Assembly: GCA_044892525.1 (NCBI GenBank)
Contig: CM097886.1
Span: 1,488,001 to 1,552,000, forward strand
Reading direction: 5' to 3'
DNA from: Schmidtea polychroa
Lineage: Eukaryota
Length of the DNA: 64,000 nucleotides
Below are positions 1,416 through 55,026 of this stretch, piece by piece (position 1 is the stretch's first letter; each line of letters begins with the position of its first letter). The position numbers and the translations under genes were made by a program. The notes below the pieces were generated by a model. The model saw only the letters and a program-made list of their open reading frames with translations. It had not been told where the DNA came from and made no database searches.

Positions 1416-1419
1416 AAAA

Positions 1420-4687: not shown

Positions 4688-4695
4688 ATTTAAAC

Positions 4696-5394: not shown

Positions 5395-5810
5395 TGATAT
5401 TACCGTACTCGGAAGGATATAAAGATTATAAAAGGAAGATGAGCAAGCAGTTGCGCACTTTAAATTATGTTATTGTTTCTAATTCGTGTAAAGTTAGCAA
5501 TATGTTTATTATTAAATCTCAAATACTGGATTAATTTGTTGTCATATTTTGTTTATAAATTTTCATTTAATAGGTGTAACACCATATACATTAGACAGAC
5601 TTCCGTTATCTCTGTACTGCAGTTCTAGAACATTGTCAGCATAATAGATTTATCAATATCAGTAAGCATAAAAAAGGATGTGTGAGTCAAACAAGCATGT
5701 CTGATCTTTATTTTAAACATGTGATTTGTGAAGTGCTATTGATAAGTTAGTTTTATCCGAAAATTAATGTACAAAATGCTGTTTACTTCTGTGTGTTTGA
5801 ATGTTTGAAA
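5395..5810 (+). mobile_element. Decayed Penelope-like element (PLE) GIY-YIG 3' fragment, same family as 53692-54369
   Basis: Manual translation across frameshifts gives LPYSEGYKDYKRKMSKQLRTLNY, VYKFSFNRCNTIYIRQTS, RYLCTAVLEHC and [18 protein letters not shown]. These align with [52 protein letters not shown] and [21 protein letters not shown]. Confidence 0.8.
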
Positions 5811-6797: not shown

Positions 6798-7310
6798 CTG
6801 ATAATATTTCCCGTCCAAAAAGCACCCGGTTATATTCTTGAAGCACCCAATCACTTCTAAATCTACAAATTTCTTGCTAGCTACGTCTTCTTTTTCGATG
6901 ATAATTTCCACAGAAATCAGATATAGACCGATATCAATTGTAAGCTCCTTTTCATCCGATTGATAAGACTTTCTGGACATATTTCGCTTTTCGTTTATAA
7001 AGATCAATTCAACCGAATGAAGCTGCTTTCCAATGATCAGCTGAATTCAGGAATGTTTACTAATAATAACAATAATTGACAATAATATTTCTACTTGATG
7101 AATAAATGGAATTTCTCTATTTCCATTGTCGGTTAAATCAATCTTGATCGCTGTCGTCTCTTTTGTAGTTATTTCCAATCCAGACGAGTCAGATTTGCGC
7201 AATTTATATACATTATTAATATTATTATTATTGTTATCCGATTTGCTGTTGATAGAGATTTGATGGTCAGCAATGAAAACGTTTGATACCATTCCATTAA
7301 CCAATTTGCA
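6798..7310 (-). CDS. F5/8 type C (discoidin)-like domain, distal copy, split by a 54-nt intron (7041-7094)
   Basis: Starts CKLVNGMVSNVFIADHQIS (compare FA58C C..LGM.SG.I.D.QI.ASS) and ends DLEVIGC (compare LRLELYGC). Splicing joins PFIHQ to LIIGKQLHSVELIF in frame. Confidence 0.6.
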
Positions 7311-10300
7311 TGGGGCAGTTGTAGGTCTCGTTGGTAATGTCGTTGTAGAAATGGCTGTTGATGTCGTAGATTTTGTGGATGTTGGTGTCGAGGAAGAACT
7401 TGTCGTTACTCTTTCTTTTGTTGTTGATGATCCAGTTGTTGTTGATCCAATTGTTGTTGTTGATTTAGTGGTTGTTGATCCAGTTGTTGTTGTTGTTGGC
7501 CCAGTTGTTGTTGTTGTTGGCCCAGTTGTTGTTGTTGATTTAGTGGTTGTTGGTCCAGTTGTTGTTGTTGATTTAGTGGTTGTTGGTCCAGTTGTTGTTG
7601 ATCCAGTTGTTGTTGTTGGCCCGATTGGTGTTGTTGATTTAGTGGTTGTTGATCCAGTTGTAGTTGTTGTTGATTTAGTGGTTGTTGGTCCAGTTGTTGT
7701 TGATCCAATTGTTGTTGTTGATTTAGTGGTTGTTGATCCAGTTGTTGTTGTTGTTGGTCCAGTTGTTGTTGTTGATTTAGTGGTTGTTGGTCCAGTTGTT
7801 GTTGATCTAATTGTTGTTGTTGATTTAGTGGTTGTTGATCCAGTTGTTGTTGTTGTTGGTCCAGTTGTTGTTGTTGATTTAGTGGTTGTTGGTCCAGTTG
7901 TTGTTGATCCAGTTGTTGTTGTTGGCCCGATTGGTGTTGTTGATTTAGTGGTTGTTGATCCAGTTGTTGTTGTTGGTCCAGTTGTTGTTGCTCCAGTTGT
8001 TGTTGTTGTTGGCCCAGTTGTTGTTGTTGATTTAGTGGTTGTTGGTCCAGTTGTTGTTGTTGATTTAGTGGTTGTTGGTCCAGTTGTTGTTGATCCAGTT
8101 GTTGTTGATCCAGTTGTTGTTGTTGGCCCGATTGGTGTTGTTGATTTAGTGGTTGTTGGTCCAGTTGTTGTTGTTGGTCCAGTTGTTGTTGTATGTCCTG
8201 TTGTTGTTGATTTAGTGGTTGTTGGTCCAGTTGATGTTGATCCAATTGTTGTTGTTGATTTAGTGGTTGTTGGTCCAGTTGTTGTTGTTGTTGGTCCAGT
8301 TGTTGTTGTTGTTGGCCCAGTTGTTGTTGTTGATTTAGTGGTTGTTGGTCCAGTTGTTGTTGATCCAATTGTTGTTGTTGACTTAGTGGTTGTTGATCCA
8401 GTTTTTGTTGTTGTTGGTCCAGTTGTTGTTGTTGTTGGCCCAGTTGTTGTTGTTGATTTAGTGGTTGTTGGTCCAGTTGTTGTTGTTGATTTAGTGGTTG
8501 TTGGTCCAGTTGTTGTTGTTGATTTAGTGGTTGTTGATCCAGTTGTTGTTGTTGGCCCGATTGGCGTTGTTGATTTAGTGGCTGTTGATCCAGTTGTTGT
8601 TGTATGTCGAGTTGTTGTTGTTGATTTTGTGGTTGTTATCGATCCACTAGATGTTGTTGACTTTGTGGGAGTTGTTGGTGAAGAAGTTGTAGGTAAAGCT
8701 GTTGATTTTATCGTTGTTGTCGGTGAAGAAGTTGTAGGTAAAGTTGTTGATTCTGTGGTTGTATTTGATCCTAAAGATGTTGTTGACTTTGTGGGAGTTG
8801 TTGGTGAAGAAGTTGTAGGTAAAGCTGTTGATTTTATCGTTGTTGTAGGTGAAGAAGTTGTAGGTAGAGTTGTTGATTTTGTGGTTGTTATCGGTCCAGT
8901 TGTTGTTGGTCCAGTTGAAAATGGTCCAGTAGTTGTTGTTGATTTAGTGGTTGTTATACGTCCAGTTGTTGTTGTTGGTCCAGTTGTTGTTGTTGGTCCA
9001 GTTGTTGTTGTTGGTCCAGTTGTTGTTGTTGGTCCAGTTGTTGTTGTTGATTCAGTTGTTGTTGTTGGCCCAAGTATTGTTGTTGATTTAGAGGTTGTTA
9101 GTCCAGTTGTTGTTGTTGGCCCAATTATTGTTGTTGATTTAGAGGTTGTTAATCCAGTTGTTGTTGATCCAGTTGTTGTTGTTGGCCAGATTGGTGTTGT
9201 TGATTTAGTGGTTGTTGATCCAGTTGTTGTTGTTGATTTAGTGGTTGTTGGTCCAGTTGTTGTTGATCCAGTTGTTGTTGTTGGCCCGATTGATGTTGTT
9301 GATTTAGTGGTTGTTGATCCAGTTGTTGTTGTATGTCCAGTTGTTGTTGTTGATTTAGTGGTTGTTGGTCCAGTTGTTGTTGTTGGCCCGATTGGTGTTG
9401 TTGATTTAGTGGTTGTTGATCCAGTTGTTGTTGTTGGCCCGATTGGTGTTGTTGATTTAGTGGTTGTTGATCCAGTTGTTGTTGTTGGCCCGATTGGTGT
9501 TGTTGATTTAGTAGTTGTTGATCCAGTTGTTGTTGTATGACCAGTTGTTGTTGATCCAGTTGTTGTTGTTGACCCGATTGGTGTTATTGATTTAGTGGTT
9601 GTTGATCCAGTTGTTGTTGTTGGACCGATTAGTGTTGTTGATTTAGTGGTTGTTGATCGAGTTGTAGTTGTTGGCCCGATTGATGTTGTTGATTTAGTGG
9701 TTGTTGGTCCAGTTGTTGTTGTTGACCCAATTGTTATTGTTGATTTAGTGGTTGTTGCTCCTGTTGTTGTTGTTGGTCCAGTTGTTGTTGTTGGCCCGAT
9801 TGGTGTTGTTGATTTAGTGGTTGTTGATCCAGTTGTTGTTGTTGGCTCGATTGGTGTTATTGATTTAGTGGTTGTTGCTCCAGTTGTTGTTGTTGGCCCA
9901 ATTGGTGTTATTGATTTAGTGGTTGTTGATCCAGTTGTTGTTGTTGACCCAATTGTTGTTGTTGATTTAGTGGTTGTTGATCCAGTTGTTGTTGTTGGGG
10001 TGATTGGTGTTGTTGATTTAGTGGTTGTTGATCCAGATGTTGTTGTTGGCCCGATTGGTGTTGTTGATTTAGTGGTTGTTGATCCAGTTGTTGTTGTTGG
10101 CCCGATTGGTGTTGTTGATTTAGTGGTTGTTGATCCAGTTGTTGTTGTTGGCCCGATTGGTGTTGTTGATTTAGTAGTTGTTGATCCAGTTGTTGTTGTA
10201 TGACCAGTTGTTGTTGATCCAGTTGTTGTTGTTGACCCGATTGTTGTTATTGATTTAGTGGTTGTTGATCCAGTTGTTGTTGTTGGACCGATTAGTGTTG

Positions 10301-13300
10301 TTGATTTAGTGGTTGTTGATCGAGTTGTAGTTGTTGGCCCGATTGATGTTGTTGATTTAGTGGTTGTTGGTCCAGTTGTTGTTGTTGACCCAATTGTTAT
10401 TGTTGATTTAGTGGTTGTTGCTCCTGTTGTTGTTGTTGGTCCAGTTGTTGTTGTTGGCCCGATTGGTGTTGTTGATTTAGTGGTTGTTGATCCAGTTGTT
10501 GTTGTTGGCTCGATTGGTGTTATTGATTTAGTGGTTGTTGCTCCAGTTGTTGTTGTTGGCCCAATTGGTGTTATTAATTTAGTGGTTGTTGATCCAGTTG
10601 TTGTTGTATGTCCAGTTGTTGTTTTTGATTTAGTGGTTGTTGCTCCTGTTGTTGTTGTTGATTTAGTGGTTGTTGATCCAGTTGTTGTTGTTGGCCCAAT
10701 TGGTGTTGTTGATTTAGTGGTTGTTGATCCAGTTGTTGTTGTTGGTCCAGTTGTTGTTGATCCAGTTGTTGTTGTTGATTTAGTAGTTGTTGATCCAGTT
10801 GTTGTTGTTGGCTCGATTGGTGTTGTGGATTTAGTGGTTGTTGATCCAGTTGTTGTTGTTGGCCCGATAGATGTTGTTGATTTAGTAGTTGTTGATCCAG
10901 TTGTTGTTGGCCTAGTTGTTGTTGTTGATTTAGTGGTTGTTGATCCAGTTGTTGTTGTTGATTTAGTGGTTGTTGATCCAGTTGTTGTTGTTGATTTAGA
11001 GGTTGTTGGTTCAGTTGTTGTTGATCTAGTTGTTGTTGTTGACCCAATTGTTGTTGTTGATTTAGTGGTTGTTGATCCAGTTGTTGTTGTTGGGGTGATT
11101 GGTGTTGTTGATTTAGTGGTTGTTGATCCAGATGTTGTTGTTGGCCCGATTGGTGTTGTTGATTTAGTGGTTGTTGATCCAGTTGTTGTTGTTGGCCCGA
11201 TTGGTGTTGTTGATTTAGTGGTTGTTGATCCAGTTGTTGTTGTATGTCCAGTTGTTGTTGTTGATTTAGTGGTTGTTGGTCCAGTTGTTGTTGTTGATTT
11301 AGTGGTTGTTGATCCAGTTGTTGTTGTTGGTCCAGTTGTTGTTGATCCAGTTGTTGTTGTTGATTTAGTAGTTGTTGATCCAGTTGTTGTTGTTGGCCCA
11401 ATTGATGTTGTTGATTTAGTGGATGTTGATCCAGTTGTTGTTGGCCTAGTTGTTGTTGTTGATTTAGTGGTTGTTGATCCAGTTGTTAATGTTGGTCCAT
11501 TTGTTGGTCCAGTTGTTGTTGATCCAGTTGTTGTTGTTGGCCCGATTGATGTAGTTGATTTAGTTGTTGTTGATCCCGTTGTTGTTGTTGATTTAGTGGT
11601 TGTTGGTTCAGTTGTTGTTGATCCAGTTGTTGTTGTTGACCCAATTGTTGTTGTTGATTTAGTGGTTGTTGCTCCTGTTGTTGTTGTTGGTCCAGTTGTT
11701 GTTGTTGGCCCGATTGGTGTTGTTGATTTAGTGGTTGTTGATCCAGTTGTTGTTGTTGGCTCGATTGGTGTTATTGATTTAGTGGTTGTTGCTCCAGTTG
11801 TTGTTGTTGATTTAGTGGTTGTTGGTTCAGTTGTTGTTGATCCAGTTGTTGTTGTTGACCCAATTGTTGTTGTTGATTTAGTGGTTGTTGCTCCTGTTGT
11901 TGTTGTTGATCCAGTTGTTGTTGTTGGCCCGATTGGTGTTGTTGATTTAGTGGTTGTTGATCCAGTTGTTGTTGTTGGCTCGATTGGTGTTATTGATTTA
12001 GTGGTTGTTGCTCCAGTTGTTGTTGTTGGCCCAATTGGTGTTATTGATTTATTGGTTGTTGATCCAGTTGTTGTTGTTGGTCCAGTTGTTGTTGATCCAG
12101 TTGTTGTTGTTGATTTAGTGGTTGTTGCTCCAGTTGTTGTTGTTGGCCCAATTGGTGTTATTGATTTAGTGGTTGTTGTTCCAGTTGTTGTTGTATGTCC
12201 AGTTGTTGTTGTTGATTTAGTGGTTGTCGCTCCTGTTGTTGTTGTTGATTTAGTGGTTGTTGATCCAGTTGTTGTTGTTGGCCCGATTGGTGTTGTTGAT
12301 TTAGTGGTTGTTGATCCAGTTGTGGTTGTTGGCGCGATTGGTGTTGTTGATTTAGTGGTTGTTGATCTAGTTGTTGTTGTTGGCCCGATTGGTGTTGTTG
12401 ATTTAGTGGTTGTTGATCCAGTTGTTGTTGTTGGCCCGATTGGTGTTGTGGATTTAGTGGTTGTTGATCCAGTTGTTGTTGTTGATTTAGTGGTTGTTGA
12501 TCCAGTTGTTGTTGTTGGCACGATTGGTGTTGTGGATTTAGTAGTTGTTGATCCAGACGTTGTTGTTGATTTTTTGGTAGTTACCGGTTTGTTAGTCGTT
12601 ATCGAAATGAATGTTCTAGATGTTGTACTTTCTTTCGGTGTTGTTCCACATGTTGATTCATCAACTGTATATGACATACATTTTGCATTTATGACAATTC
12701 TTGTTTTTGATTCAAATTTTTCTTCATATGTATCAATGAATGATTGATAACCGCTTTTACAAACACATTCCGTTGCATTCTTAACGATTTCTACCTTGCC
12801 CCAAATATCACTTTCATCAAGACATTGTCCACAATGAGGATTACAGAGATAATCTATTTGGCAATATGAATTTGGCTTATCTGGTAAACAATTGCAACAT
12901 TCGAGATTTTCATTCACGTTTGAACAAACCTTTATCTCCTCCTATATTAGAATTATGAAATTATTTCATGTTATGTTAAATTTGATGTAAATACCTTTCC
13001 ACATGTTTTAGTTGGATTCTGAGTTCGGCAACTGATTTTATTGTCAGAACAGTAGCAGATTTTGGACGAGCATTCCTCCTTAGTCATTGTAGTATTCAAT
13101 GTTTGATGATTCTGAAATATAAAAGATTTATCTAACAGTAATGAGTTTCAGTCAATTCTCATGTCAAATATCTATATAAAATTTGAGCCTTTCATATTTA
13201 ACATAATACTGATAAAAACGTTGACTGGATTTTTCTTGGCAAATGTTTTATTCTGGATCGAGTGACAGAAAGGATCTTATTTACTGGATATTTATGAGTG

Positions 13301-16300
13301 TATATATAAATAAAACTTTCGTATACTTGTATTATCCTAATTCCACATACGAAACCGAGCAAATGAATACAAATTGAGATAGTTCTTTTTTACTTTATTT
13401 ATTATTTAACCACATATCATAATATTTGGTAAGAAATTTTGGATCATGTAAAAAATCGTCAACTCTTGAAATATAAATAAACAAAATAAAATATTAATAA
13501 AATATAAATTGAAAATATATTAAATCTTTTATTTAAAAGATTTTGAAATTTTTGTTTATGTGAATCATTATTGTTGTTAACCAAAGGCAAGGATGCTGCA
13601 ATTTACTTGGAATGACGATGCCAAGTAAAAAATTGTATACGCTATAATAATGGCACTAGTTTATAAAAAAATGGTTTTTTGAAAACATATGCCTTCCGTT
13701 AGAGAAAATTTAAAGATATTGATATAATGGCCACAAATTTGAAACCAGCATGAAATATCTAAATTTGTAAAAGTGTCACGAACAACACATCAAAAAATAC
13801 GACAATTATTTATCGAAAGAATAAAAATTTATTTTCAAAAAAATCCCATTCGCCTTGATGGTCCTGATGTCTTTGTTAAATGTGATGAGACAATGTTAAA
13901 TCGCAAAGTAAAAAGCCATCGTAGATGTAGTCTGATAGAAAAAACATGGGGGTTCGTTATTATTGACACTTCGACTACACCAGCTTTGGGTTATATTGAA
14001 ATTGTTCAAAATCAGTCAAGGAATATTTGATTGCCCATTATCAACAGTATTGTTAGAACAGGTTTTATAATTCCACACTGATTAATGGCTACTTTATGCT
14101 AAAGTAAATTCCGTAATTTGTTTGAACATGACGCAATTACTCACAAATACCATTTGGTGTGTCTGATTAAGGGAGTGCATACTCAACACGTTTAACAATA
14201 AGCTTTAACAATCAGATAATGGGAACAAGAAAGGAAATGAAAGGGTTATATGATGTTGGTAGTAAAGATTTTGCTGTTGAATTTTGGTTTTTGGACAAGT
14301 TCAAATTTTTGGCATACAATAAAATGCCTAAATTATTGGCTTAAGATTATTTTTAATTTTTTCTCTTCTAATTGATGTAGCTTAACATTTTATTTATTTA
14401 AAAGCTTGACTATGAATCAGTAAATTTATCGATGTTTTTATTTGATATTCATGAAAAAGGCAGTGGCGGAAATTCGGGAATATTAAAAAAAATGTGAATA
14501 TATTTTCTGATTCACAGTCAAACTCTTCAATAAATACAATGTCAATTGAAAAGAAATCAGTGATGAAAATTGAATAAGTGTAGCTTAAATTGTTATTGTT
14601 TAATATATTCGTTTTTGATGTTCTGTTAAATGTTGTCTATTTTTGACATTTTTACATGATCCGAAAGTTCAAGCAGAACGAAGCCTGTTTCTGACATTTA
14701 TTTCAGATTTAAAAATTACATTATTCGATCACATTCAGATTATTCTACTAATTCTACATTTTTAACGAATTTCCTTATAAAACCATATTTTGTTGAATTT
14801 GTCTTTCAATAAATCTTATAATGCTTACTTTCTGAAAATTATTTTATACAAAATCTGACACTAATATCCTCTACATAATACAGAAAATGTTGGTAAATAT
14901 AAAACCAAAGTATTTTTGAATCAATGAAGTGAAAATATAAGTGAAAGATGCATATTTTAAAGAAATAAATAAATAGTAAACTTACCTGATAATATTTCCC
15001 GTCCAAAAAGCACCCGGTTATATTCTTGAAGCACCCAATCACTTCTAAATCTACAAATTTCTTGCTAGCTACGTCTTCTTTTTCGATGATAATTTCCACA
15101 GAAATCAGATATAGACCGATATCAATTGTAAGCTCCTTTTCATCCGATTGATAAGACTTTCTGGACATATTTCGCTTTTCGTTTATAAAGATCAATTCAA
15201 CCGAATGAAGCTGCTTTCCAATGATCAGCTGAATTCAGGAATGTTTACTAATAATAACAATAATTGACAATAATATTTCTACTTGATGAATAAATGGAAT
15301 TTCTCTATTTCCATTGTCGGTTAAATCAATCTTGATCGCTGTCGTCTCTTTTGTAGTTATTTCCAATCCAGACGAGTCAGATTTGCGCAATTTATATACA
15401 TTATTAATATTATTATTATTGTTATCCGATTTGCTGTTGATAGAGATTTGATGGTCAGCAATGAAAACGTTTGATACCATTCCATTAACCAATTTGCATG
15501 GGGCAGTTGTAGGTCTCGTTGGTAATGTCGTTGTAGAAATGGCTGTTGATGTCGTAGATTTTGTGGATGTTGGTGTCGAGGAAGAACTTGTCGTTACTCT
15601 TTCTTTTGTTGTTGATGATCCAGTTTTTGTTGATCCAATTGTTGTTGTTGATTTAGTGGTTGTTGATCCAGTTGTTGTTGTTGTTGGCCCAGTTGTTGTT
15701 GTTGTTGGCCCAGTTGTTGTTGTTGATTTAGTGGTTGTTGGTCCAGTTGTTGTTGTTGATTTAGTGGTTGTTGGTCCAGTTGTTGTTGATCCAGTTGTTG
15801 TTGTTGGCCCGATTGGTGTTGTTGATTTAGTGGTTGTTGATCCAGTTGTTGTTGTTGTTGATCCAATTGTTGTTGTTGATTTAGTGGTTGTTGATCCAGT
15901 TGTTGTTGTTGTTGGTGGTCCAGTTGTTGTTGATCCAGTTGTTGTTGTTGGTCCAGTTGTTGTTGGCCCGATTGGTGTTGTTGATTTAGTGGTTGTTGAT
16001 CCAGTTGTTGTTGTTGATCCAGTTGTTGTTGTTGGCCCGATTGGTGTTGTTGATTTAGTGGTTGTTGATCCAGTTGTTGTTGTTGGCCCGATTGGTGTTG
16101 TTGATTTAGTGGTTGTTGGTCCAGTTGTTGTTGTTGATTTAGTGGTTGTTGATCCTGTTGTTGTTGTTGTTGATCCAGTTGTTGTTGTTGTTGATGCAGT
16201 TGTTGTTGGTGTTGATTTAGTGGTTGTTGGTCCAGTTGTTGTAGTTGGCCCGATTGTTGTTGTTGATTTAGTGGTTATTGATCCAGTTGTTGTTGTTTGT

Positions 16301-40300: not shown

Positions 40301-43300
40301 TCTATGTTTATAAAAAGAAAATCATATTGTTTTGATGTCTAAACCAATCGATTTACCGCATAAAGAACTAGATCTCCACTTGAGAGTTAAGCCATTTTTC
40401 ATGCAAGCTCTTGCGTACGATGCCATAGATTCACAGGCACAGTTGTCTCGTTCGTTTCCACCGCATAGGCATATGTCGTGTTCACATTGTTGAATGAATG
40501 GGTTAGGATCAACTGACATGTGGCACGAATTGAAGGGTTCTAATTAACGGTGGGCTAATATTGATTTTATTAATTCACTCAATCACCATATAATAATCTC
40601 TGACAGAATTCTTTTGCAAATTTTTCGTATTCATAACTCTTGGCACATACTCCCAAATAATTTAATGATAAGGTGCTTTTGCATTCCGCTGTTGCCCATG
40701 ACACTGCTAACTCATTGTCATTGGTAGTTAGTTCTCCGCTGGATTTCGTAGCATCATCTTCAGAATTTCCGTTGTAATTTCCACACAAACCTTGAACCTA
40801 GGTAATTTAAACTTTGCATTCCTTTCAAGTTAAAAACTGCCGGCAGAACGATAAAAATTGAAATAAGATTATTGTATTTTCAGTTTTTCACGTAATTATC
40901 GATATTTAACAATAACCAATTCTTTATATGATATGGATGGGATAACTTAATAGGGTTCAGTGTCTTAAGTTTAAACAGGATTTAATCGCAAAATGTTGCG
41001 CGTGTTACTGGTAATATCAACAGTATCGACACATTTAAACATCCAACTGATATAATTTTGCAATAATTATGTCCACGATTACAATAAAAGGTTTTTCTTA
41101 TAATACGCATACATATATATATTTCAGTGGTTTTCGGCCATGTGGAATAGTTTACAAAATATTAATAATTTTAATTTTACCTTTAAAAGTTGGAGCTTAT
41201 TAAATATCTAAGAACTTATTTAATGTCCAATAATGTGCATTTATTTTATAGAAATGTTTTGAAAAGTGCTTGTGTGTATGAATTTATTTTTCTTCTCTCA
41301 ATGATTTTTTCTATTTGCCGATAGCAGCTGTACTCAACCTTTTCAGATCATTAGAACTCTATAATCAACAAATTATACAGATTGCCTTAATTTAAAAAAA
41401 AAGCTTTAAGTTGCCTAATGTAACAAGTTTAGGCATCCGTTTTCAGTGGAAATTCATATAATGTCCACTTTTATATATTTAGACTAGAGCAAATAGTCTC
41501 ATAAAAGCCGAATTTTCAAGATAATTGGTCTTTTTGAATGTATAGAATGTTTCTGGAGCCCCTCAAAAGATTACGGAACTACAGTTGAAGCACCTTGATC
41601 TATAATATTTGCGCTCATTTAATGTTACTCTTGTCAGTGACACGCATACGCACCCATTTATAATTGGTTAGTTTTATTTATATTATTGAAACTCTAAATT
41701 AATGTCATCTAAACTCTAATCAATGGCGCTTTGGTAGACCAAAGAAATTATATTCGATCGATAGAAATTTATTCTGAAAATTTTTTGTGGAATTTAAAAT
41801 CGATATTTATTTAGATTTTGGTATTTTGGAATTAAATAAAGATTTATTTGGAATATTTATTTTTTTCACCTAGGGAACTTGACATAATTTCAAATTGTAT
41901 TTGAAAAGAAAGAACTGTTATTCCTTTCCTGTTATCCAGATCAGTGATATTGAGACTTGGACATAAGATTTAAAAAATACATAAATTCTAATTATGAAGA
42001 AGGAAATAAAAAATTAAAAAATTAAGATTTGTTGGTGTACAGTGTGATTGGATTCCACTGGGATGTTCCTGGAAAAGTCGAGAAATTTATCAAAACAGTA
42101 AATTTATTATATAATTTCTGAGAAAATTCTACTTAACTATTTCGAATTAACTTTTAAAATCTACTCGACACAATCGCGTCGTTTTGCAAAAACAAAGATG
42201 ATTAAATGAAAATTAGAAAGAGAAAATATAAACTCAATGCTTACTTGGTCCTGATAGAATTCCGGAAGTGTTATTTCTATTTGCGTTTTTTGATGCCATA
42301 AAATGCGGATTCCATTATATGATTCGATAAGGACAGTGTCGTGAGCAACTTCATGGATTGTAATTGGTAAGGGATCATTGATATGCAGAGGCAATTTATT
42401 CGGGATTTTGTTGACAAGAATATCTTTGGTTGTTACTAATCNNNNNNNNNNNNNNNNNNNNNNNNNNNNNNNNNNNNNNNNNNNNNNNNNNNNNNNNNNN
42501 NNNNNNNNNNNNNNNNNNNNNNNNNNNNNNNNNNNNNNNNNNNNNNNNNNNNNNNNNNNNNNNNNNNNNNNNNNNNNNNNNNNNNNNNNNNNNNNNNNNN
42601 NNNNNNNNNNNNNNNNNNNNNNNNNNNNNNNNNNNNNNNNNNNNNNNCTGTATAAAGGTATTTTTGTCAGTGTCTCCAAATTGTAATGATAGCGATTTTG
42701 TACAGTAAGCATCGCTCGATTTCATGCAATGAGTATTTTGCACCCATATTTTCAAAACTTTGTTCCCAGTGATCGACGGCTTGGTAGTTACCATTGTATA
42801 GAAACAGCTACCTTCAACATAGATATGGCGTTTGTCGAATGTTGTATAATGTGGATCTCCGCTGATGACGCATGTTCCACTACACCCATTGATTTTAGTG
42901 CAGTTAAACACTCCGCCTTTCGAGCATTCACTAAAGTTATTTTGTGATATATTGACATGAAATATATTTTCAGTAATTAAAATTTTATTACAACAGATAA
43001 AAAATGTATAAACCTATTTTTAATACTCTATAAAACTATTTATTCGAAGAAAACGAATTCGTTATAAAAAATGTTAATATTTGGAAAAGTCCAATTATCA
43101 ATTGAAATTTATTTTTTTCATGATCATAATTGTTATTATCTTGATATAAATGTAGGTGAGAACGAAAAAGTATACCGCATTGCAAAACCTCCATTAAATA
43201 TACATATGATGTAATCGAACAGAATAAAAATAATACAAAAAACGATATCCATTCACTCTCCAAATACCCTCTGACACGGCCAGCTTTACAAGCTATCATT

Positions 43301-46300
43301 TATTGATTTATCTGTGTGATATAACGATTGCTAATAATAAAATTTACCATATTTCACAATCTCTCTTGAATGACATTCCTTGATGATAGACGACCATACT
43401 GTTACCATTCTTTCTGATACATGGACACTGAGGTTTCGGCACACAATATGTTCCATTCCAAAATCGATCTGAAATGATATTTAACCCCTTAGCAATTTGG
43501 TCATTTATATAATTACACACCCTTCGGACAAAAACATCCGGCTGTGCAGAATGATTTGCAATTTTCATCGGTAATTAGATCTTCACAGTTCTGAGAACAA
43601 CTATTTCCACACTCTGAATATTCTTTATTGGCAGGGCATTCGCGAGGAGCTACAAAAACGAGAAATATTGCATAATTTAGTTAACTAAAATTTACCACAG
43701 AGCTGGCTTCTCCAGTTGATCAATTTTCCGTACAACGTGCACTGGTACGATTTGTAGCTGCCCATGCTGCATGCAATGTTGGCACAGACACTTATATTCT
43801 GCCCGGAATTCAAGCAGTGGCACAATTCACTGCGGCATATCGATTGATAGGGAGTAACCGCTGGAATGGAACATTGGGATAGGTCTCCACCAAATACATC
43901 CTGGCACATGTTGTTAGCCTTAATGGGAGAGGATTATTGAAAAATAGCGGAGGATTCAAAAATTTACTGTTGTTACTAAATCGTTATTCAACCCAGTGCA
44001 TAAATCGCGACCATTAGTATAATATACGTTGGGATCAATCGGATCGGGATTTTTCCAGTATTTCATGAATTCTGTCACATTTTCAATAGATTCTCCGTTG
44101 ATGTTTTTAAATTCTGAACTAATTGAACTGTTTCCATCGAAGTATCCACAAAGACCACAAACGCCATTCTTCATTGTTGATGGTGCAAAAATGAAAACGT
44201 TCCTTTTTCCGTCATACAAAATCTCTAGCTCTACATGACAATGTGATATATAATTTTGTTTTTTTAGTTCATTAAGATTAATATTAACAATATTTTAAAT
44301 ATTCCGCAAAAAACAAAAAAATAATAATATTGTATACTTGGCTTGGTTTATACTCCTCATTTGTCACTATTCTATCAAAATGTATTGAATTTTTTCCAGG
44401 GATATTTGGCTTGGTTTATACTCCTCACTACTCTAATGAAGTATAATTATTATATAAGAGGTCAAAGGTCAATTATTGTGTAAGGGGTCAAAAGTTAATT
44501 ATTATTTAAGAGGTCAATTATTGCGTAAGGGGGTCAATTATGACGTAAACCTAAAAAATCAATCGTTACATAATCAAAAATAAAATTACGTCATTTTACG
44601 TATGATTATGTAACTTTACAAAATTATGTAATACCACATCCCCTAGGGTACCAATACAAATATTATGTACTATTGTATATTTGGCTTGGTTTATACTCCT
44701 CACTTGTCACTACTTGTCACTTCAGAATATATTATTAAATATATTATTTCACTCGAAAAATTTTTACAATAAAACTATTTTATTTAATAAAAATGAATTT
44801 ATTATTCGTGGGAACTGCCTTATTAATATGCACCAACGAACAATTTCACATTAAAAGTAGCTTCAAAAGTATGGACAGGAATTGTATGGAAAGGATAATT
44901 TTTGAATAAATAGTAAATAAATTTTTGATAAAATAAATTAATCAGGAAATTATACTATTAATTCTAAATATTATTTGAAATATTGGGATTGAATTTCTTC
45001 CAATCGCATTTATTTCTCAATAAATTAAAATAATAAAAATAAATAAATATAAAATTAATAAAATAATAATAAGTAAAATTGAATATAATAAACATTGACA
45101 TATATTTACTGATTCATAGTCAAGTTTTTTAATAAATACAAAGTAAAATTAAATAAAAAAATAATAAATTAAAATTATAAAATATTAAATTAGTTATAAA
45201 AACTAAATTAAATTAAATGATAAATAAAAATAATAAAATATTAAAATAATAATAATAAAATTTTAATTAAATAAAACAATAATAAGTTAAAATTATTCAA
45301 TAATTATTAATAATAAAATAAAATAATAATTCTATTAAATATAATTAATTAAANNNNNNNNNNNNNNNNNNNNNNNNNNNNNNNNNNNNNNNNNNNNNNN
45401 NNNNNNNNNNNNNNNNNNNNNNNNNNNNNNNNNNNNNNNNNNNNNNNNNNNNNNNNNNNNNNNNNNNNNNNNNNNNNNNNNNNNNNNNNNNNNNNNNNNN
45501 NNNNNNNNNNNNNNNNNNNNNNNNNNNNNNNNNNNNTTTTATCAAAGTTTAAATTTAAAAATTATTTATTTAAAAAATTTTAATTAGTTAATTAATACCT
45601 CCGATTCCTTTAATTTGATTGAAATCCCCAATATTTTTATGTTGAATTGAACTGATATAATTCCTGTTAGAACTACCAGAAGAATTAGATAATCCCAGAA
45701 ATGTGACCGATTCGGATGCAGTTTCAATCTATAAAGAACACTTTGAGAATGTATATGAATAAAATGTTACCATCAATGAAGTGTCACAATTGACAAAATC
45801 TTTGGTCGGACAATTGTAACTACTGTTGAAGAAAATTCGATAGCTCGGTTTTCGACTTAAACAGTCAATGACGAGTATGTTTGAACCTCTCAGTGGGTTT
45901 TCTATTGAGACTCCATCGAATGTCGTAACGTAGCTCCCACCCATTATCGAACATAATTTATAGTCTTTGTATTTGGTGTTTATTACATCTAAATGTTCAG
46001 TTGTTTCCCTTTATGAAAATATATATATTAAATTCCACCTGATATTTTAAGATTAGAAGTGTTGGGTTCCCTGAAAAAAGTTTCGCAATTTCTTCCTCGA
46101 AAATTCTCGGGACACTGGCAGACATTTGGTTCAACACAAATGCCAGTTCCGCAACCATACCGACAAAATGCTATTATAAACAATGAAAATGATCTGAATT
46201 TTTTGTTATAAATAACATAACTAACCTCTATCACATCTTTCACCTTCATAACCCGAATCACAGATGCAGTCGCCATTTTTACACTTTCCTCTAATGCAGC

Positions 46301-49187
46301 CTTGAATGCATGGTTTCTCGTCGGCTAGTTTTATTAGAATTTTATTTATGAAGAGTAAAATTATGTGAAGAATCATTAAGAAAGAAAATGAAATTGTACA
46401 AATAAAGTGGATTGTTAAAATAATTTAACAATACACTTGATTTCTGAGAAAGAAACTTTAAATTCTGTTTTTTTAATTTTAATAATTTCAAATATAAATG
46501 TCTGTAATTTGAAGGGGTCAAATAATTTGCAATTGCCATAGTTGAGTCACTTAACATTTTATATCCTCTTTATCATTAATCTATTATTTTCATTATCAAT
46601 TGAATTTTATCTTTACTTCAAAGATAGATCAATAATTTTTCAGTTCAGTGAATAAAAGAAAATACTATTTATTAGAAAAAGAAATATATTTTAAGGATAT
46701 GGTTCTCATCTTCAGTCCACCATCAAATTTTTTGTCTATATAAAGAATAGGTTATTACTTAACAGAATTATAACACAAAAATTTGTATAAATATTTGTTG
46801 AATTGTATTAAATCAGCCATGGCCAACCGGTGGCCCGCGAAGCGTTTTGATGTGGCCCGGACACAATTTTAAACATCAAATCAATAATTGTCTTTTTTAG
46901 AATTCATATTCGAATTAAGCATGTTATTAATTTAAAAAATTGATTCTAAGTTTACTTGAATCGTAAAAACGAGTTATATTTATTTAAATGAATTTATTGT
47001 GACCCGTGATAGTATTTTTCCGAAAATTTGGCCCTTCGATTGATTTGGGTTGGCCACCACAGTATTACATAATACTCTCCCAATAATTATCAAAACCCTT
47101 ATACAGAATTTGTTATTTCTCTACAATTTTTTCTGTATTCATTATTATTGCTTATGCCTTTCAATCTAGTTTAAAGATTGGCTGTACACCTATTAAATAT
47201 AAATTTATAGGCTAAGTCTGACAACTAGACGATTGGAATTTAAGATTTTTTTTTAAATAAATTACATGTTTTCATAAACTTTGACTCTGCTTTAAAAGTA
47301 TGGTTATGTAAAATATTCAAAATAGAATGCTTGAAACTTGTATAGCCTTCACAATAAGGAACAACCAGCACACGCAATTTGGTATCATTACCAGTTTTAT
47401 AGCGAATACAACTATTTTCATTTGATATTATTAAAATTCGACTTTTTTATAAAATTTTGGAGTAACCATTTTTTATTCAAAGGAATAAAAGTTCCACTTG
47501 TACTTTTATCAGCTTTAATAAATGTTGATCGCAATTATATACTACATTATTCTGTTTAACACTCCGTTAAAATTCTCTGTACAAACAAATCCAAAAACGT
47601 TTCCTAGAATATTCTTTATTTGTGTCAATAAATGACTTAGAATCTAATGACTTCTTATTCGGATCATTTTAATGTTGTAGATTATTAATTGAAAGGGAAA
47701 TTAGGAAATTAATATATTTATTTTTCAGATTCAAAATAATAAAATAAGAAATTTTTAAAGAAAAATGAGAAAACTTGATAAAATAAAAAAAATGATAAAT
47801 CTTCGCGTCTCCTGCATGGTACTGATGAGAGCCAAAAGCTTGAAACTAGTCTACTATTGGATTTTTGCACTGGATATCACAAAGCTTGTGCTGTTTATAC
47901 TATTCAAAACATCGGGGGAAAATGTACACCGTCACTTTATAAATATATATTAGTAATAATTTTAATTTAACCCTGTGAATAACCCATTCCATACTGAAAG
48001 ACGTTTGATTTTTCAACTGATGTATCAATTAGACTTTACAAATCTACCAAAATATTTTTACCTTCATTATCAAAATGCATTAAATGTAATAATAATAAAT
48101 AATTAATGAAATTTAAAAACATCACTTATTCTTAATAATTTTACATAATAAACAATTATTTATAAAGATGTCCCAGATTAAATTTAAATATATAAATAGT
48201 TTGTTGGATTGTTTTGTAAAACCTAGCGATAAAATCATCAAATAAATAATAAAGAGAAATAGTATTTAACTAAAGAAAATAATTCTATTATCTAACAAAC
48301 AAAACGAACTTTAAACACATCCTTTTCCAAATTGAACTATTTGTATATTCTTTAAAAATTGAATAATCATTACTACTTTTAATTTTTTCTTTCGAAGCTT
48401 TAATATACAACAATAATTATTTCTATTGAATATAGAAAATCGAATTAACTAATAATTTCAAAAAAAGTGCCTTTCGAATAATATTTGATATACTCACAAA
48501 TTTAAACATTTCATTTTATGAAATATATTTCGTAAATTTGATTTTAATTAACTGAAATTTAATAAATAAATTATTTATTAGACATTTTCGGATACTTTAA
48601 ATTTAATTAAAATTAGCAATTAATAAATTTAATATACCGATTCTGAATGAGCAATCGTCACCAGAAAACTTAGGATCACATTGACATCTATTTGGCTCTA
48701 TGCACATTCCACCGTTTTTACAAGGCTGTTGGCATATTGCTAAACAGAAGTTTTTATAGTTTTTACTTATAATTCTAAAGAATTACGAAATTGGCAATCG
48801 GTTCCTGTCCATCCGTTGCAGCATTTTCTTTTATATCTTCATTCGAAAAAATAATTAGAAAAAATTATAAGAAATCTATGCTTTACCGTCTAATTTGGCA
48901 TTGGTCACCTTCCATTACAAGTTGATCATTGTCCTTAATAGATTCTTTAGCAACATCACAAGGCTGAAAGGGTTCTCTAACGAAGGATTCGCCACAAAAT
49001 CGATTGTATTCTTCAGCCAAAATTTGAATGCTGAAATAGTGCAAGTGAAATTCACATAAATAGCAATAAATAAAATTAAAAATGAAAACCATCAGTTAAA
49101 GATAACTTTCAACAATTATATTTTTCTGGTCAAAAAAATTTACCTGAGAGACAAAACAAACCAAATGAAGATCTGTACGAGCTTCAT
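6798..49187 (-). CDS. Giant multi-exon secreted gel-forming mucin / hemolectin / SCO-spondin-like protein (3' end not found in window)
   Basis: ATG at 49187. Spliced signal peptide MKLVQIFIWFVLSLSIQILA. EGF repeats, three VWD-C8-TIL assemblies, LDLa, a tandem beta-module array, TIL/VWC-like exons and two PTS exons follow. The GT-AG junctions checked by hand keep phase (for example exons 6798-7040, 7095-12941, 12995-13111, 14986-15228, 15283-17613). N-gaps hide some exons, and one apparent frameshift lies near 48666. Confidence 0.88.
7095..12941 (-). CDS. 5847-bp single exon: short Cys-rich lead-in plus a very long Thr/Ser/Pro/Gly mucin (PTS) tandem repeat
   Basis: Open 1949 codons. The dominant unit is GPTTTTGSTTTKSTTPI (17 aa, 51 bp) with variants. 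Acceptor at 12942-12943, donor at 7093-7094. Confidence 0.95.
9370..10600 (-). repeat. Higher-order 663-bp tandem duplication inside the PTS exon
   Basis: Rare variants (gtatga at 9535 and 10198, ggaccgattagt, gatcgagttgtag) recur at a 663-bp offset. Antisense ORFs 9595 and 10258 begin with identical peptides. Boundaries are approximate. Confidence 0.85.
13690..14340 (+). mobile_element. Decayed Merlin / ISXO2 (IS1016-like) DDE transposase in a mucin intron
   Basis: RLDGPDVFVKCDETMLNRKVKSHR..TWGFVII..VQNQSRNI*LPIINSIVRTG..HDAITHK..GVHTQH matches the eukaryotic ISXO2-like motif series GPG..VEIDES..KRK.HRG..WVFG..NR..TL.PII..NH..G.HTQ. Multiple stops; TIRs not identified. Confidence 0.8.
14743..15850 (-). 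repeat. ~1.1-kb internal duplication (offset 8188 bp from 6555-7660): PTS end, F5/8-like domain and ~240 bp of intron
   Basis: Identical translations at 6651/14839 and in the C-termini of ORFs 7047 and 15235. Only a few substitutions seen, including in the introns. Confidence 0.95.
15283..17613 (-). CDS. 2331-bp exon: VWC-like lead-in, two related Cys-rich spacers, ST-rich segments, PTS repeat and first half of an F5/8-like domain
   Basis: Open 777 codons. Spacers ICTFVFCSEYTCENECLN..FCTRIKQENC and VCIYGYCSVYTCNKNCLN..LCAGKVETNC. Acceptor ttaag at 17614. Confidence 0.92.
17970..22698 (-). CDS. Mucin exons encoding TIL- and VWC-like Cys-rich linkers with short Thr tracts
   Basis: For example PGCECPENLFFNGKDCVSRKECMC, ICECKEPLVFNGTDCINVKECPC and FCEDDTCVCNQNGALTC. 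In-phase junction WTHRKVCLLTCSE / KTHKLVENDNQCCEC. Confidence 0.8.
20074..20400 (-). mobile_element. Highly decayed 3' end of a Buster-type hAT transposase
   Basis: The minus strand gives LLPSGRSYHCNRRCSALTEGK and TLSGIEPRINVVSNKKQSQ, resembling the Buster C-terminus LLPF.T.YLCE.GFSAL..IK..L..IEP.I..L...KQ.Q. cagtgttg at 20074 may be the terminus. Confidence 0.45.
22747..34690 (-). repeat. Array of nine three-exon, Cys-bracketed ~140-aa modules (eight near-identical, one diverged) separated by short Thr-rich linkers
   Basis: Spliced unit: C(A/T)KEVVTLTKNEKMKVEIQNVTNGSVTDVEKILT/SEKEWNSNKNEISFVIKLTPKSNTEVNIVNLEINVNTNSVVTVTFGKKSEEIIQPEY/KTTGTETVKFYFNKTDKNGEQFEYVKVSIITIDGKPLTVKNLIVKVC. The diverged copy at 33405-34690 (CEKKQAELTS..TDVANIFTS / GKSWIAINTNASF..NPY / TVIG..FILWVC) has the same splice positions. 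Confidence 0.88.
31121..31375 (+). pseudogene. TRAF-family MATH domain fragment, antisense inside a mucin intron
   Basis: IYSDPFYSHKNGYKMCLQLHPDGFTAGKGTHLSVFFFIMRGENDVLLQWPMKLEVT matches the TRAF signature IYSPPFY..GYKMCLR.YLNGDG.G.GTHLSLFF.IM.GEYDA.L.WPF. Bounded by in-frame TAA at 31118-31120 and 31373-31375. Not in the ORF track because there is no start codon there. Confidence 0.85.
34950..35180 (-). CDS. LDL-receptor class A-like repeat(s) of the mucin gene
   Basis: VCNENNFKCLSDPKCI and CENGLCARICNGVPECSDGSDEANC, with the LDLa acidic motif C.G..DC.DGSDE..C. Confidence 0.8.
35225..38260 (-). CDS. TIL' plus third VWD-C8-TIL (D3-like) assembly
   Basis: CKSWGDAHYKTFDG..CGLCGNFDQNLNNDF (VWD). 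CLSDTCSCDRGGDCECLCTALSAFYSAC..WRSNELC (C8, very close to the MUC2/VWF D3 motif). TIL exons flank it on both sides. Confidence 0.92.
38656..39627 (-). mobile_element. One-ended hAT (ZMYM1/Ac-like) transposon remnant in a mucin intron
   Basis: Terminus cagtggcggatt at 38656. Dimerisation domain FPNLAILYKIYLTLPVTSVTAERSFSRLKIIKNYLRSTMTNERLSGL. Upstream KRVAKRKRMAGE..RFKCETYFTVLD segment. Frameshifted. Confidence 0.9.
39628..39808. repeat. Perfect 181-bp palindrome (two 90-bp arms, 1-nt centre at 39718)
   Basis: 39628-39717 is the exact reverse complement of 39719-39808. Confidence 0.95.
39945..42940 (-). CDS. Second VWD-C8-TIL (D2-like) assembly
   Basis: CVISGDPHYTTFD, GLCGNYNGNSEDD, CEHDICLCGGNERDNCACESMASYARAC..WRSSSLC and TIL CPNGMEYMECKNLC. 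Partly interrupted by an N-gap. Confidence 0.92.
43345..45950 (-). CDS. First VWD-C8-TIL (D1-like) assembly
   Basis: MGGSYVTTFDG, GVCGLCGYFDGN, CRSELCHC..NWRSQLC and TIL CPANKEYSECGNSCSQNC..GCFCP. An N-gap hides part of the VWD. Confidence 0.88.
44329..44718. repeat. Three ~30-45-bp direct repeats (ttggcttggtttatactcctca) bracketing a ggtca-rich segment
   Basis: Copies near 44338, 44406 and 44681. The segment between them has ggtcaaaggtcaattat, ggggtcaaaag, aggtcaattat and gggggtcaattatgacgt. Confidence 0.8.
46060..49187 (-). CDS. 5' exons of the mucin gene: signal peptide, Cys-rich (EMI-like) segment and EGF-like repeats
   Basis: Exon 49144-49187 MKLVQIFIWFVLSL. RKCCNGWTGTDC, ICQQPCKNGGMCIEPNRCQC, PCIQGCIRGKCKNGDCICDSGYEGERC and CRYGCGTGICVEPNVCQCPENFRGRNC. 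Confidence 0.8.
46814..47062. mobile_element. 249-bp hAT Buster/Charlie (MER5-like) MITE
   Basis: TIRs cagccatggccaacc and ggttggccaccacag. Subterminal tggccc motifs. 8-bp TSD tattaaat/tattacat (7 of 8 match, nnnTAnnn). Confidence 0.8.

Positions 49188-54957: not shown

Positions 54958-55026
<69 letters not shown>

Follow-up and report, generated by a model that had tools for sequence, protein, structure and literature searches.

The locus is best explained, with a probability of about 0.7, as one very large flatworm gene whose product is secreted, mucin-like and heavily O-glycosylated; the flatworm would probably be a free-living planarian. In the window (the whole stretch of DNA analysed, 64,000 nucleotides), a curated splice model on the minus strand runs from an ATG at 49187 to a splice donor at 6798 and comprises 67 exons, about 6,377 amino acids and 0 in-frame stops. 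Its mini-introns are uniform at about 50 nt, 48 of the 62 introns in the model being 40-58 nt long. The exon chain was curated by hand using an orthologue fragment (P0011), a Macrostomum protein and the consistency of the repeats, and spurious automatic exons in long or transposable element-bearing introns were removed. The model begins with a signal peptide, a Cys-rich N-terminus, three EGF domains, D1-D2-D'D3, a sub-threshold LDLa-like module and a VWC module; these are followed by nine modules of about 144 amino acids (termed X), a TIL/VWC-rich stretch, a first PTS tract (PTS1), a domain termed Y, a Cys-rich stretch, a second PTS tract (PTS2) and a second Y. Among the exon-sized pieces Pfam identified three EGF, three VWD, two C8 and four TIL domains, a third C8 being recognised by homology only. 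The domain order given in the original prediction is essentially right; its LDLa remains below threshold and its F5/8 domains are not seen by Pfam. The minus-strand exon chain of more than 6,000 amino acids that it described is likewise real, stop-free up to the last exon at 6798, the coordinate at which the prediction also ended. That 49187-6798 is one continuous gene of this size is likely, not proven, because no stop or further coding exon follows 6798 and because the block 6555-7661 repeats 14743-15849.

The N-terminal part, from the signal peptide to the end of the D3 assembly, contains the following features.

49144-49187, minus strand: exon 1, with the ATG and the signal peptide MKLVQIFIWFVLSL, then a gtaaat donor (direct sequence reading).
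48787-49030, minus strand: exons 2-3, a Cys-rich N-terminal region ending in CCxGWxGxxC (junctions in the DNA; aligns with Macrostomum residues 75-87).
46039-48739, minus strand: three EGF-like exons at 48739-48638, 46324-46226 and 46170-46039 (Pfam EGF_PEAR1L, EGF_2 and EGF_TEN).
43968-45988, minus strand: VWD1, with its N part at 45988-45771, its C part at 44230-43968 and CGLCG at 44159-44145 (Pfam VWD in both pieces; homologue alignment and ORF inspection).
43348-43918, minus strand: a C8-1-like domain, TIL-1, then a Cys-rich E module (Pfam TIL; C8-1 by tblastn with mucin homologues).
40587-42930, minus strand: VWD2 in three pieces, 42930-42648, 42439-42245 and 40797-40587, with GDPH at 42860-42849 (Pfam VWD; gap-edge sequence).
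39963-40539, minus strand: C8-2, TIL-2 and a VWC/pacifastin-like E2 module (Pfam C8 4.6e-20, TIL, VWC/Pacifastin_I).
38258-39962, minus strand: a 1.7-kb intron with a hAT transposon remnant, its dimerisation domain at 39102-38845 (Pfam Dimer_Tnp_hAT).
37466-38257, minus strand: the D' TIL and VWD3, with CGLCG at 37512-37498 (Pfam TIL 3e-10, VWD 2.1e-29).
35112-35921, minus strand: C8-3, TIL-3 and E3 (Pfam C8 7.9e-18, TIL).

The best match of VWD3 is the D3 of mucins, and 12 of 12 cysteines of C8-3 align with those in the D3 structures of MUC2, MUC5AC, MUC5B and VWF. The D3 exon shows a pN of 0.15 and a pS of 0.75 against a relative and, as judged by sequence comparison, is under purifying selection. 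At 92% identity, the orthologue fragment P0011 has the same exons spliced; it directly joins the exons on either side of the hAT-bearing intron 38258-39962. Where the window has this 1.7-kb intron, only about 30 nt stand in L001, a related genomic contig. An N-terminal EMI domain was considered and rejected: the region is EMI-like by the motif CCxGWxGxxC only, and Pfam finds no EMI.

The order of parts recurs in a flatworm protein. The VWFD domain-containing protein A0A1I8G0U9 of Macrostomum lignano (GenBank PAA50248.1), uncharacterised and 3,824 amino acids long, is collinear with the model: residues 68-1398 of the model align with Macrostomum residues 108-1494 at 35% identity over 1,418 columns (864 bits), and residues 2926-3510 align with 1957-2562 in a second HSP (E 1e-30). 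Common to both are the signal peptide, the Cys-rich N-terminus with CCxGWxGxxC, EGFs, D1-D2-D'D3, an LDLa-like module, VWC, an X-type module followed by the motif C..C..C.NG.W, TIL/VWC spacers with short PTS linkers, and the discoidin-fold Y; the Macrostomum model is also without CTCK, and none was found in the window. They differ in copy number and detail. Macrostomum has four EGFs, one X module and eight Y domains with short PTS linkers, whereas the window has three EGFs, nine X modules and two Y domains, which are preceded by PTS tracts of about 350 and 1,750 amino acids; the VWD2 of Macrostomum has GDPTY and no GDPH, while that of the window has GDPH.

A flatworm, probably a free-living planarian, is the most likely host as far as sequence can tell. 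The adjoining XPO1, whose identity to its database matches reaches at most 69-70%, groups with that of the flatworm (schistosome) Heterobilharzia at 100/97 support. The original prediction had considered a myxozoan host, in which retention of a giant glycoprotein would point to a spore mucous envelope, attachment or immune shielding. This is extremely improbable. The AT-rich composition and the short introns, all that would suggest it, are unspecific; the XPO1 grouping with a flatworm (100/97), its 67-69% identity to bilaterian XPO1 and a best collinear, full-length relative from Macrostomum leave the myxozoan idea unsupported, and long introns and intergenic DNA so rich in transposable elements do not point to genome reduction. 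The framing in terms of a parasite should be dropped. A Hydra or other cnidarian host was rejected on the same flatworm affinities of XPO1 and of the closest full-length relative, and no RefSeq-type full-length orthologue was found.

Behind the D assemblies lie an LDLa-like module and the X array.

34739-35056, minus strand: the LDLa-like module (35056-34958, with DGSDE), a short T-rich linker and a VWC-like module at 34912-34739 (Pfam sub-threshold; motifs).
22747-34682, minus strand: nine X modules, about 144 amino acids from Cys to Cys, three exons each, with introns of 47-52 nt and short T/S/P linkers.

The LDLa-like module has six cysteines, DGSDE at 34981-34967 and a shortened C3-C4 loop; it scores 19.3 bits with Pfam Ldl_recept_a (PF00057), below the cutoff of 24.1, with profile positions 8-37 covered. 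The first X module is divergent and spans the gap 34067-34270, and is related to the other X modules with an hhalign probability of 98. X4 and X7 are interrupted by introns of 2.96 kb and 2.66 kb, respectively, and X blocks are 98.3-98.7% identical to each other. The X modules match no Pfam family, either as exon pieces or as the contiguous Macrostomum X at E<=1. In a Pfam search at E<=1 with the contiguous X, Y, N-terminal and LDLa-like regions of Macrostomum, together with the P0112 domain, only EGFs were found, and neither X nor Y had a significant match among the 155 best VWD proteins by BLAST, HMM or phmmer. Structure prediction of the Macrostomum X, with the C-type exons of the window as alignment, reached a pLDDT of 49, too low for use; Foldseek with this low-confidence model gave weak jelly-roll, CBM and discoidin-like matches (E>=0.014), which are no more than a hint, and no link of X to discoidin was detectable. 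X can tentatively be proposed as an unclassified extracellular domain family (about 144 amino acids, beta-rich, Cys at each end), apparently common only to the window and one Macrostomum module at the same position. With the divergent discoidin domains and the apparent absence of CTCK, the same tentative proposal would place the protein in a flatworm-specific class of polymeric mucins with an N-terminal D assembly only and lectin-like cross-linking. X offers a repeated, unclassified module open to structural characterisation.

The remainder of the model alternates between Cys-rich stretches, PTS tracts and Y domains.

17977-22694, minus strand: 11 exons forming a Cys-rich stretch, in which short PTS linkers join VWC-like, TIL-like and unclassified modules (weak Pfam TIL; collinear with Macrostomum 1957-2562, E 1e-30).
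15505-17613, minus strand: the end of a VWC module, Cys-box modules at 17343-17182 and 16614-16456, and PTS1, with 51-nt units at 16408-15604 (ORF translation, TRF).
14986-15504, minus strand: Y1 in two exons, 15504-15283 and 15228-14986, with a 54-nt intron, ending with a VWC-like start and a gtaagt donor (alignment with the Macrostomum Y, hhalign, fold of the homologue).
12648-13111, minus strand: VWC-like and Cys-rich modules, encoded by exon 13111-12995 together with the opening 98 codons of the big exon (gene model, translation).
7317-12647, minus strand: PTS2, about 1,750 amino acids, Thr-rich, with about 101 degenerate 51-nt units (composition; TRF, 76% matches).
6798-7316, minus strand: Y2, the second discoidin-fold copy, in exons 7316-7095 and 7040-6798, running without a stop codon to a gtaagt donor.

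PTS1 comprises about 0.35 kaa, in which TRF finds the 51-nt unit about 15 times, and the ORF 12941-7050 (1,964 aa), which contains PTS2, consists of 51% Thr, 12% Ser and 7.5% Pro. Pfam detects no F5/8 type C domain (PF00754) among the pieces of the window at E<=0.05, and at E<=1 it detects none in the Y array of Macrostomum either. A weak TIL apart, the pieces of the C-terminal Cys-rich exons likewise gave no Pfam match. The Y domains of the window do align with the Y modules of Macrostomum (hhalign P 1e-4), and Y1 has terminal cysteines in APCKLV (15504-15487) and VIGCF (15042-15028). An AF2 model of a Macrostomum Y module has a pLDDT of 85, and the top Foldseek matches of this model are the discoidin domains of CASPR2, FVIII C2, neuropilin b1 and DDR2 (probability 1.0, TM 0.6-0.68). 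In hhalign, the Y profile matches an FA58C profile built from hemocytin-like matches with a probability of 96.8 (E 2e-10); with the window Y as master the probability is 96 (E 4.5e-9, 82 columns). Y would on this comparison be a remote homologue with a divergent discoidin (F5/8 type C) fold, the fold model being that of the Macrostomum homologue, to which the window Y is linked by alignment. Used as a database query, the Macrostomum Y array found nothing outside Macrostomum, the word filter of the search being too coarse for such divergence. The putative F5/8-type domains of this gene escape standard Pfam annotation.

The 3' part of the model holds one further feature.

6555-7661, unstranded: a near-identical duplicate of 14743-15849, with 2 mismatches in 1,107 nt, 243 nt of intron included.

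The two PTS-Y ends of about 1.1 kb are 99.8% identical and the X blocks about 98.5%, and therefore copy numbers and total length may depend on the assembly. After 6798 the minus strand shows no stop codon and no further coding exon, and 1-6700 contains no Cys-rich ORF. A 42-nt terminal exon at 6117-6076, proposed by the automatic model, was rejected as it had no support. Within the window no VWD follows D3 by tblastn with 12 mucin homologues, and no CTCK was found. The distal unit 12941-6798 (PTS2 and Y2), or part of the X array, might be an assembly artefact: alleles or collapsed repeats may have been set one after the other, or a stretch that is transcribed separately may have been included, so that the product would be shorter or end differently. 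We consider this rather unlikely. The duplicate with its intron included, the similarity of the X blocks, the 5 kb of 51-nt repeats in PTS on a gapped and apparently short-read scaffold, and a last exon that ends at a donor speak for such an artefact. However, each PTS tract shares a single ORF with the unique Cys-rich sequence that leads into it, exon 13111-12995 continues in frame the VWC-like module started at the end of Y1, and the two mismatches mean that the copies are not literally identical sequence. The eight serial Y modules of the Macrostomum homologue, moreover, indicate that several PTS-Y units are the norm of the family.

With MUC2, MUC5AC, MUC5B and VWF the window shares D1-D2-D'D3 with CGLCG and the full Cys set of C8-3, and long PTS tracts, and its D3 is 37-44% identical to that of vertebrate mucins. 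It differs from the vertebrate gel-forming mucins and VWF in that no CysD, D4 or C-terminal VWC-CTCK was found, and in its extra EGFs, X array and discoidin domains. CysD (Mucin2_WxxW, PF13330) is found by Pfam in no window piece, whereas the vertebrate matches have it. Of the features by which gel-forming mucins have been defined (Lang et al. 2007/2016), D1-D2-D'D3 and long PTS tracts are present; CysD, a common though not universal trait, and the D4/VWC/CTCK end are not seen, the 3' end of the gene lying beyond what the window resolves.

SCO-spondin, one of the proteins whose traits the original prediction saw combined here, resembles the window in three VWD domains followed by an LDLa-like module, in TIL/VWC modules, in an EMI-like motif at the N-terminus and in one FA58C-type domain, to which the putative discoidin-fold Y would correspond. 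The window differs in its long PTS tracts and in that no CTCK was found. Instead of an LDLa cluster after the VWD region, a trait of SCO-spondin, there is only one sub-threshold LDLa-like module with a single DGSDE. TSP1 repeats, the defining feature of that family, number 0: neither WxxWxxC nor CSxxCGxG occurs in the 6,377-aa model, and no piece gives a TSP_1 Pfam match. Kinship with SCO-spondin is not upheld.

The original prediction also drew on traits of insect hemolectin, and the combination of EGF, three VWD and discoidin-fold domains, together with hemocytin-like proteins bearing FA58C arrays among the VWD3 matches, could suggest a clotting or immune factor of the hemolectin/hemocytin type (protostome VWF-like) rather than a mucus component. 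Flatworms are not known to have circulating haemolymph, which counts against such a factor, and the closest relative of the protein is the flatworm protein and not a hemocytin. Several VWD3 matches among the lophotrochozoan and arthropod F5_F8 VWD proteins, hemolectin/hemocytin included, carry 2-7 tandem FA58C; these proteins have Pfam-detectable FA58C, often CysD, two more VWD ('3+2') and CTCK, whereas the discoidin-fold domains of the window are too divergent for Pfam. In the window three VWD were found, and neither the fourth and fifth VWD units nor the CTCK that mark hemolectin and hemocytin; its putative discoidin-fold Y lies after the PTS tracts, far from D3. F5_F8 domains have been linked to protostome VWD proteins (Lang 2016, PMC4948705), a point in favour of the hemolectin type; insect proteins, however, have a very small PTS in some cases and none in others (PMC4948705), against about 2,100 amino acids of Thr-rich PTS here. 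A hemolectin-type factor is on balance quite unlikely. The hybrid architecture seen in the original prediction is not without precedent: the collinear Macrostomum protein is already in UniProt/GenBank, F5_F8 domains are given as characteristic of the mucin-like VWD proteins of Lophotrochozoa (Lang et al. 2016, PMC4948705), and three planarian gel-forming-mucin-like genes have been published (PMC7117911). The gene is real, and of this known lophotrochozoan VWD/F5-8/PTS kind.

A VWD-C8-TIL 'glue' protein of flatworm temporary adhesion has to be weighed as well, since VWD-C8-TIL, EGF and LDL-like domains and glycosylation recur in aquatic adhesive proteins, Macrostomum ap1/ap2 included (PMC8621496), and discoidin domains could bind substrates. 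Mlig-ap1, however, has a C-type lectin, a single VWD-C8-TIL core and Lys/Arg/Gly-rich repeats (PMC8621496), none of which is present here. No C-type lectin and no basic low-complexity repeats were found in the window, where the repeats are Thr-rich, and the full D1-D2-D'D3 set is typical of polymeric mucins and VWF. A bioadhesive function accordingly carries little probability.

As a mucin, the protein most likely would form a structural part of flatworm mucus, of the body surface or of the pharynx and gut, as judged wholly from its domains. It would enter the secretory pathway, and its D assemblies would link it into multimers through N-terminal disulfides, as happens in VWF and MUC2. The PTS tracts, densely O-glycosylated, would swell on release into a hydrated gel, in which the discoidin-type and perhaps the X domains may serve as cross-linkers or anchors of a lectin-like or ligand-binding kind. 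The C-terminal dimerisation that classical gel-forming polymers need is unsupported, because no stop, fourth VWD or CTCK was found downstream.

Three planarian gel-forming-mucin-like genes, Smed-muc-like-1, -2 and -3 (dd_Smed_v6_17988_0_1, 18786_0_1 and 21309_0_1), have been described as expressed in peripharyngeal secretory cells of Schmidtea mediterranea (Forsthoefel et al. 2020, eLife, PMC7117911). They share with the window three N-terminal VWD and Cys-rich and TIL domains, without VWA or TSP1 (PMC7117911), and one of the three may be the orthologue of the gene in the window. Only N-terminal domains are given in that paper; the X array, the discoidin domains and the PTS lengths are not described there (PMC7117911). 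Flatworms depend on mucus for gliding, adhesion, feeding and protection, yet little has been described of its structural proteins beyond such N-terminal domain lists. If confirmed by cDNA, the locus would provide the near-complete architecture of one giant flatworm mucin.

The gene holds four assembly gaps, two of them within VWD exons, and the frame across them cannot be read because the gap lengths are estimates. The gap 17666-17951 is intronic, its flanking exons being adjacent in the homologue alignment, and 34067-34270 falls where exons B and C of the first X module meet. In VWD2, 42442-42647 interrupts the exon with about 5-8 residues missing, and 45354-45536 conceals about 30-45 residues of VWD1. 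On both sides of three of the four gaps (17666-17951, 42442-42647 and 45354-45536) the sequence follows the order of the Macrostomum protein, in each case within one BLAST HSP.

The window gene, which lies downstream of the exportin-1/CRM1 gene (XPO1) on the same strand, is genuine and very large; it is mucin-like and belongs to a kind already known from Lophotrochozoa. The window is AT-rich (GC about 31%) with seven N runs, and in six-frame inspection its minus strand shows, from 49.2 to 6.6 kb, a long run of open segments that are rich in Cys, made of repeat modules or rich in Thr. The ATG, located exactly at 49187, opens a sequence typical of signal peptides, and a gtaaat donor comes next. 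The gene was modelled with a splice-aware dynamic-programming predictor and then curated manually, guided by the orthologue fragment P0011, the homologue from Macrostomum lignano and the agreement among repeats. Predicted exons within the hAT-bearing intron and two long introns were removed, and the wrong frame proposed at 48836-48787 was replaced. The curated model contains 67 exons and encodes 6,377 amino acids plus gap-hidden residues, with no internal stops. Most introns (48 of 62) are 40-58 nt long, with a median of 51, and the remainder extend from 0.1 to 3 kb, at least one of them carrying a transposon remnant; this bimodal pattern may aid identification of the host genome. The frame cannot be read across assembly gaps because gap lengths are estimates. 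The gaps are as follows:

17666-17951, gap 1, between donor 17977 and acceptor 17613; flanking exons adjacent in the Macrostomum alignment, 0-2 residues unaccounted for
34067-34270, gap at the B-type/C-type exon boundary of the first copy of the repeated module X
42442-42647, gap 3, interrupting the VWD2 exon; coding sequence enters from both sides, about 5-8 residues absent relative to the Macrostomum homologue
45354-45536, gap 4, probably concealing an exon of about 30-45 residues in the middle of VWD1

Gaps 4 and 3 are crossed by one BLASTP HSP (model residues 68-1398 against Macrostomum 108-1494, 35% identity, 864 bits) and gap 1 by a second (2926-3510 against 1957-2562, E 1e-30).

The hybrid architecture of the original prediction is largely correct: in stop-free pieces of the gene, Pfam identifies three EGF and three VWD domains, C8, TIL and one VWC/pacifastin-like module. 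The exceptions are the F5/8 domains, invisible to Pfam, and the LDLa-like module, which scores 19.3 bits against a cutoff of 24.1 and possesses six cysteines and a DGSDE motif. The D1-D2-D'D3 set is complete, with CGLCG in both VWD1 and VWD3, and all 12 cysteines of C8-3 align with those of the solved D3 assemblies of MUC2, MUC5AC, MUC5B and VWF. Comparison of the D3 exon with a related genomic contig (L001) gives pN 0.15 and a saturated pS of 0.75, which indicates strong purifying selection. GDPH, an autocatalytic Asp-Pro cleavage motif in some VWD domains, occurs only once, in VWD2 (42849-42860, minus strand); the Macrostomum homologue has GDPTY at the equivalent site. The N-terminal Cys-rich region (48787-48887, minus strand) ends in CCNGWTGTDC immediately 5' of the first EGF, an EMI-domain-like pattern. 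Such patterns occur in EMI domains, as in MEGF/PEAR1, and SCO-spondin also has an EMI-type N-terminal pattern. Pfam finds no EMI domain in the Macrostomum equivalent of this region. A hAT transposase remnant (38845-39623, minus strand; Dimer_Tnp_hAT, 1.2e-13) resides in the 1.7-kb intron separating the exon of E2 from that of the D' TIL; at this position contig L001, from a related species, has just about 30 nt.

An exhaustive search by phmmer, with the VWD3 exon as query, retrieved 2,106 proteins, and no full-length orthologue is found among the best 150 of them. The closest relatives are two fragments, P0011 (482 aa, 92% identical, UniParc only) and P0022 (74%), taken from a Logan contig of genomic DNA. 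A paralogue fragment from a related species, P0112, is 50% identical and carries at residues ~440-560, right after the D3 TIL, a different FA58C-like domain (hhalign against the FA58C profile: probability 73, E 3e-5); the lineage thus possesses several VWD/discoidin mucin-like genes. The best long relative is the Macrostomum protein (PAA50248.1 / A0A1I8G0U9), which shares with the window gene a signal peptide, an N-terminal Cys-rich region with CCxGWxGxxC and EGFs, followed by D1-D2-D'D3, an LDLa-like module and VWC. A single X-type module and the C..C..C.NG.W motif also seen in the window gene come next, and the C-terminal part consists of TIL/VWC spacers and an array of C-to-C Y modules, counterparts of the discoidin-type domain Y, with Pro/Thr/Ser-rich (PTS) linkers in between.

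Module X is the most original feature of the gene, a repeated module outside classified families. Each of its nine copies spans about 144 aa, has a cysteine at both ends and is spread over three exons, whose introns measure 47-52 nt; T/S/P linkers some 20 aa long connect the copies. X1 is divergent yet clearly akin to the other copies (hhalign probability 98), and these eight form three blocks with 98.3-98.7% DNA identity. X corresponds to no Pfam family, and no link with FA58C or Y is detectable, including by hhalign profile comparison. In Macrostomum, the one module in the collinear position does align with X, at 23% identity over 137 columns (P 0.0014). The predicted structure of that module is unusable (pLDDT 49), and its weak Foldseek matches, to IFT25, CBM4/6/32 and NRP2 b1 (E at least 0.014), give a hint of a possible jelly-roll fold.

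The discoidin-type domain Y follows each PTS tract:

15504-15283 and 15228-14986, minus strand, two exons of Y1
7316-7095 and 7040-6798, minus strand, two exons of the second copy, Y2

Pfam has no match in the X modules or the two Y domains, and misses F5/8 in the Macrostomum Y array even at E<=1. Window Y aligns over its full length with the Macrostomum Y modules, with common motifs IDLT.GG and EVIGCF (hhalign P 1e-4, 120 columns). An AlphaFold2 model of one Macrostomum Y module, built with this alignment, reached pLDDT 85, and its Foldseek PDB matches are all discoidin domains: CASPR2, factor VIII C2, neuropilin b1, DDR2 and lactadherin C2 (probability 1.0, TM 0.6-0.68). An FA58C profile, built from hemocytin-like proteins among the VWD3-search matches, matches the Y profile with probability 96.8 and E 2e-10, or 96 and 4.5e-9 when the window domain serves as master. 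The F5/8 call thus probably holds at the fold and superfamily level.

The two PTS tracts, of about 350 and 1,750 aa, are both built of degenerate 51-nt units translating to TTTKSTTPIGPTTTTGS-like repeats; Thr makes up 51% of the ORF carrying PTS2. Antisense plus-strand ORFs over the PTS2 exon, 7273-9540 (755 aa) and 10258-12747 (829 aa), exist because the complement of the PTS repeat, in GTT-rich units, has no stop codons; it is highly improbable that they are genes. Downstream of Y1 the frame continues via exon 13111-12995 into a 5.9-kb exon. Y2 is followed only by a gtaagt donor at 6797, and neither a stop codon nor a Cys-rich exon was found on the minus strand of the final 6.7 kb. Except at two mismatches, block 6555-7661 is identical to 14743-15849, 243 nt of intron included; this could reflect recent duplication, gene conversion or an assembly problem.

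Lang et al. 2016 (PMC4948705) present F5_F8 domains as a hallmark of the mucin-like VWD proteins of Lophotrochozoa; such proteins being already described, and the part order recurring in Macrostomum, the architecture is not unique as had been proposed. Membership of SCO-spondin fails because no TSP1 repeat is present, and that of hemolectin, a 3+2 VWD protein (Lang et al. 2016, PMC4948705), because two additional VWD units and CTCK were not found in the window. Flatworm adhesive proteins differ in their core. Peripharyngeal secretory cells of Schmidtea express three gel-forming-mucin-like genes, each with three N-terminal VWDs (Forsthoefel et al. 2020, PMC7117911). By analogy with VWF and MUC2, the product would enter the secretory pathway and multimerise there via N-terminal disulfides, its Thr-rich tracts would be densely O-glycosylated and swell upon release, and its discoidin-type domains may bind ligands or glycans. 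Classical end-to-end polymerisation is less certain because CTCK, D4 and CysD were not found in the window gene; the Macrostomum model likewise lacks all three.

XPO1 occupies the minus strand from 64000 to about 52686 and extends beyond the right window edge (Pfam Xpo1, CRM1_repeat, CRM1_repeat_3, CRM1_C). Its fragment shares 67-69% identity with XPO1 of bilaterians and, in an IQ-TREE phylogeny computed without cnidarian sequences, groups with the schistosome Heterobilharzia (support 100/97). Together with the collinear flatworm homologue, orthologue fragments present only in UniParc, the GC content of about 31% and the introns of about 50 nt, this placement points to a flatworm host, probably a triclad planarian, and argues against the myxozoan host once suggested. 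Just 3' of the mucin-like gene, 1-1425 and 3421-4845 on the plus strand are 99.8% identical, owing to two separate insertions or to duplication in the assembly; their frameshifted ORFs look like hAT-type transposase in sequence, and Pfam has no match for the one ORF searched. Tandem repeats are located at 51480-52565 (period about 284 nt), between the two genes, and in an XPO1 intron at 54600-56100 (period about 290-330 nt, broken by three N gaps). Between the CRM1_C-coding exons, a 244-codon open segment with 11 cysteines and no Pfam match (53695-54426, minus strand) is possibly a mobile-element remnant.
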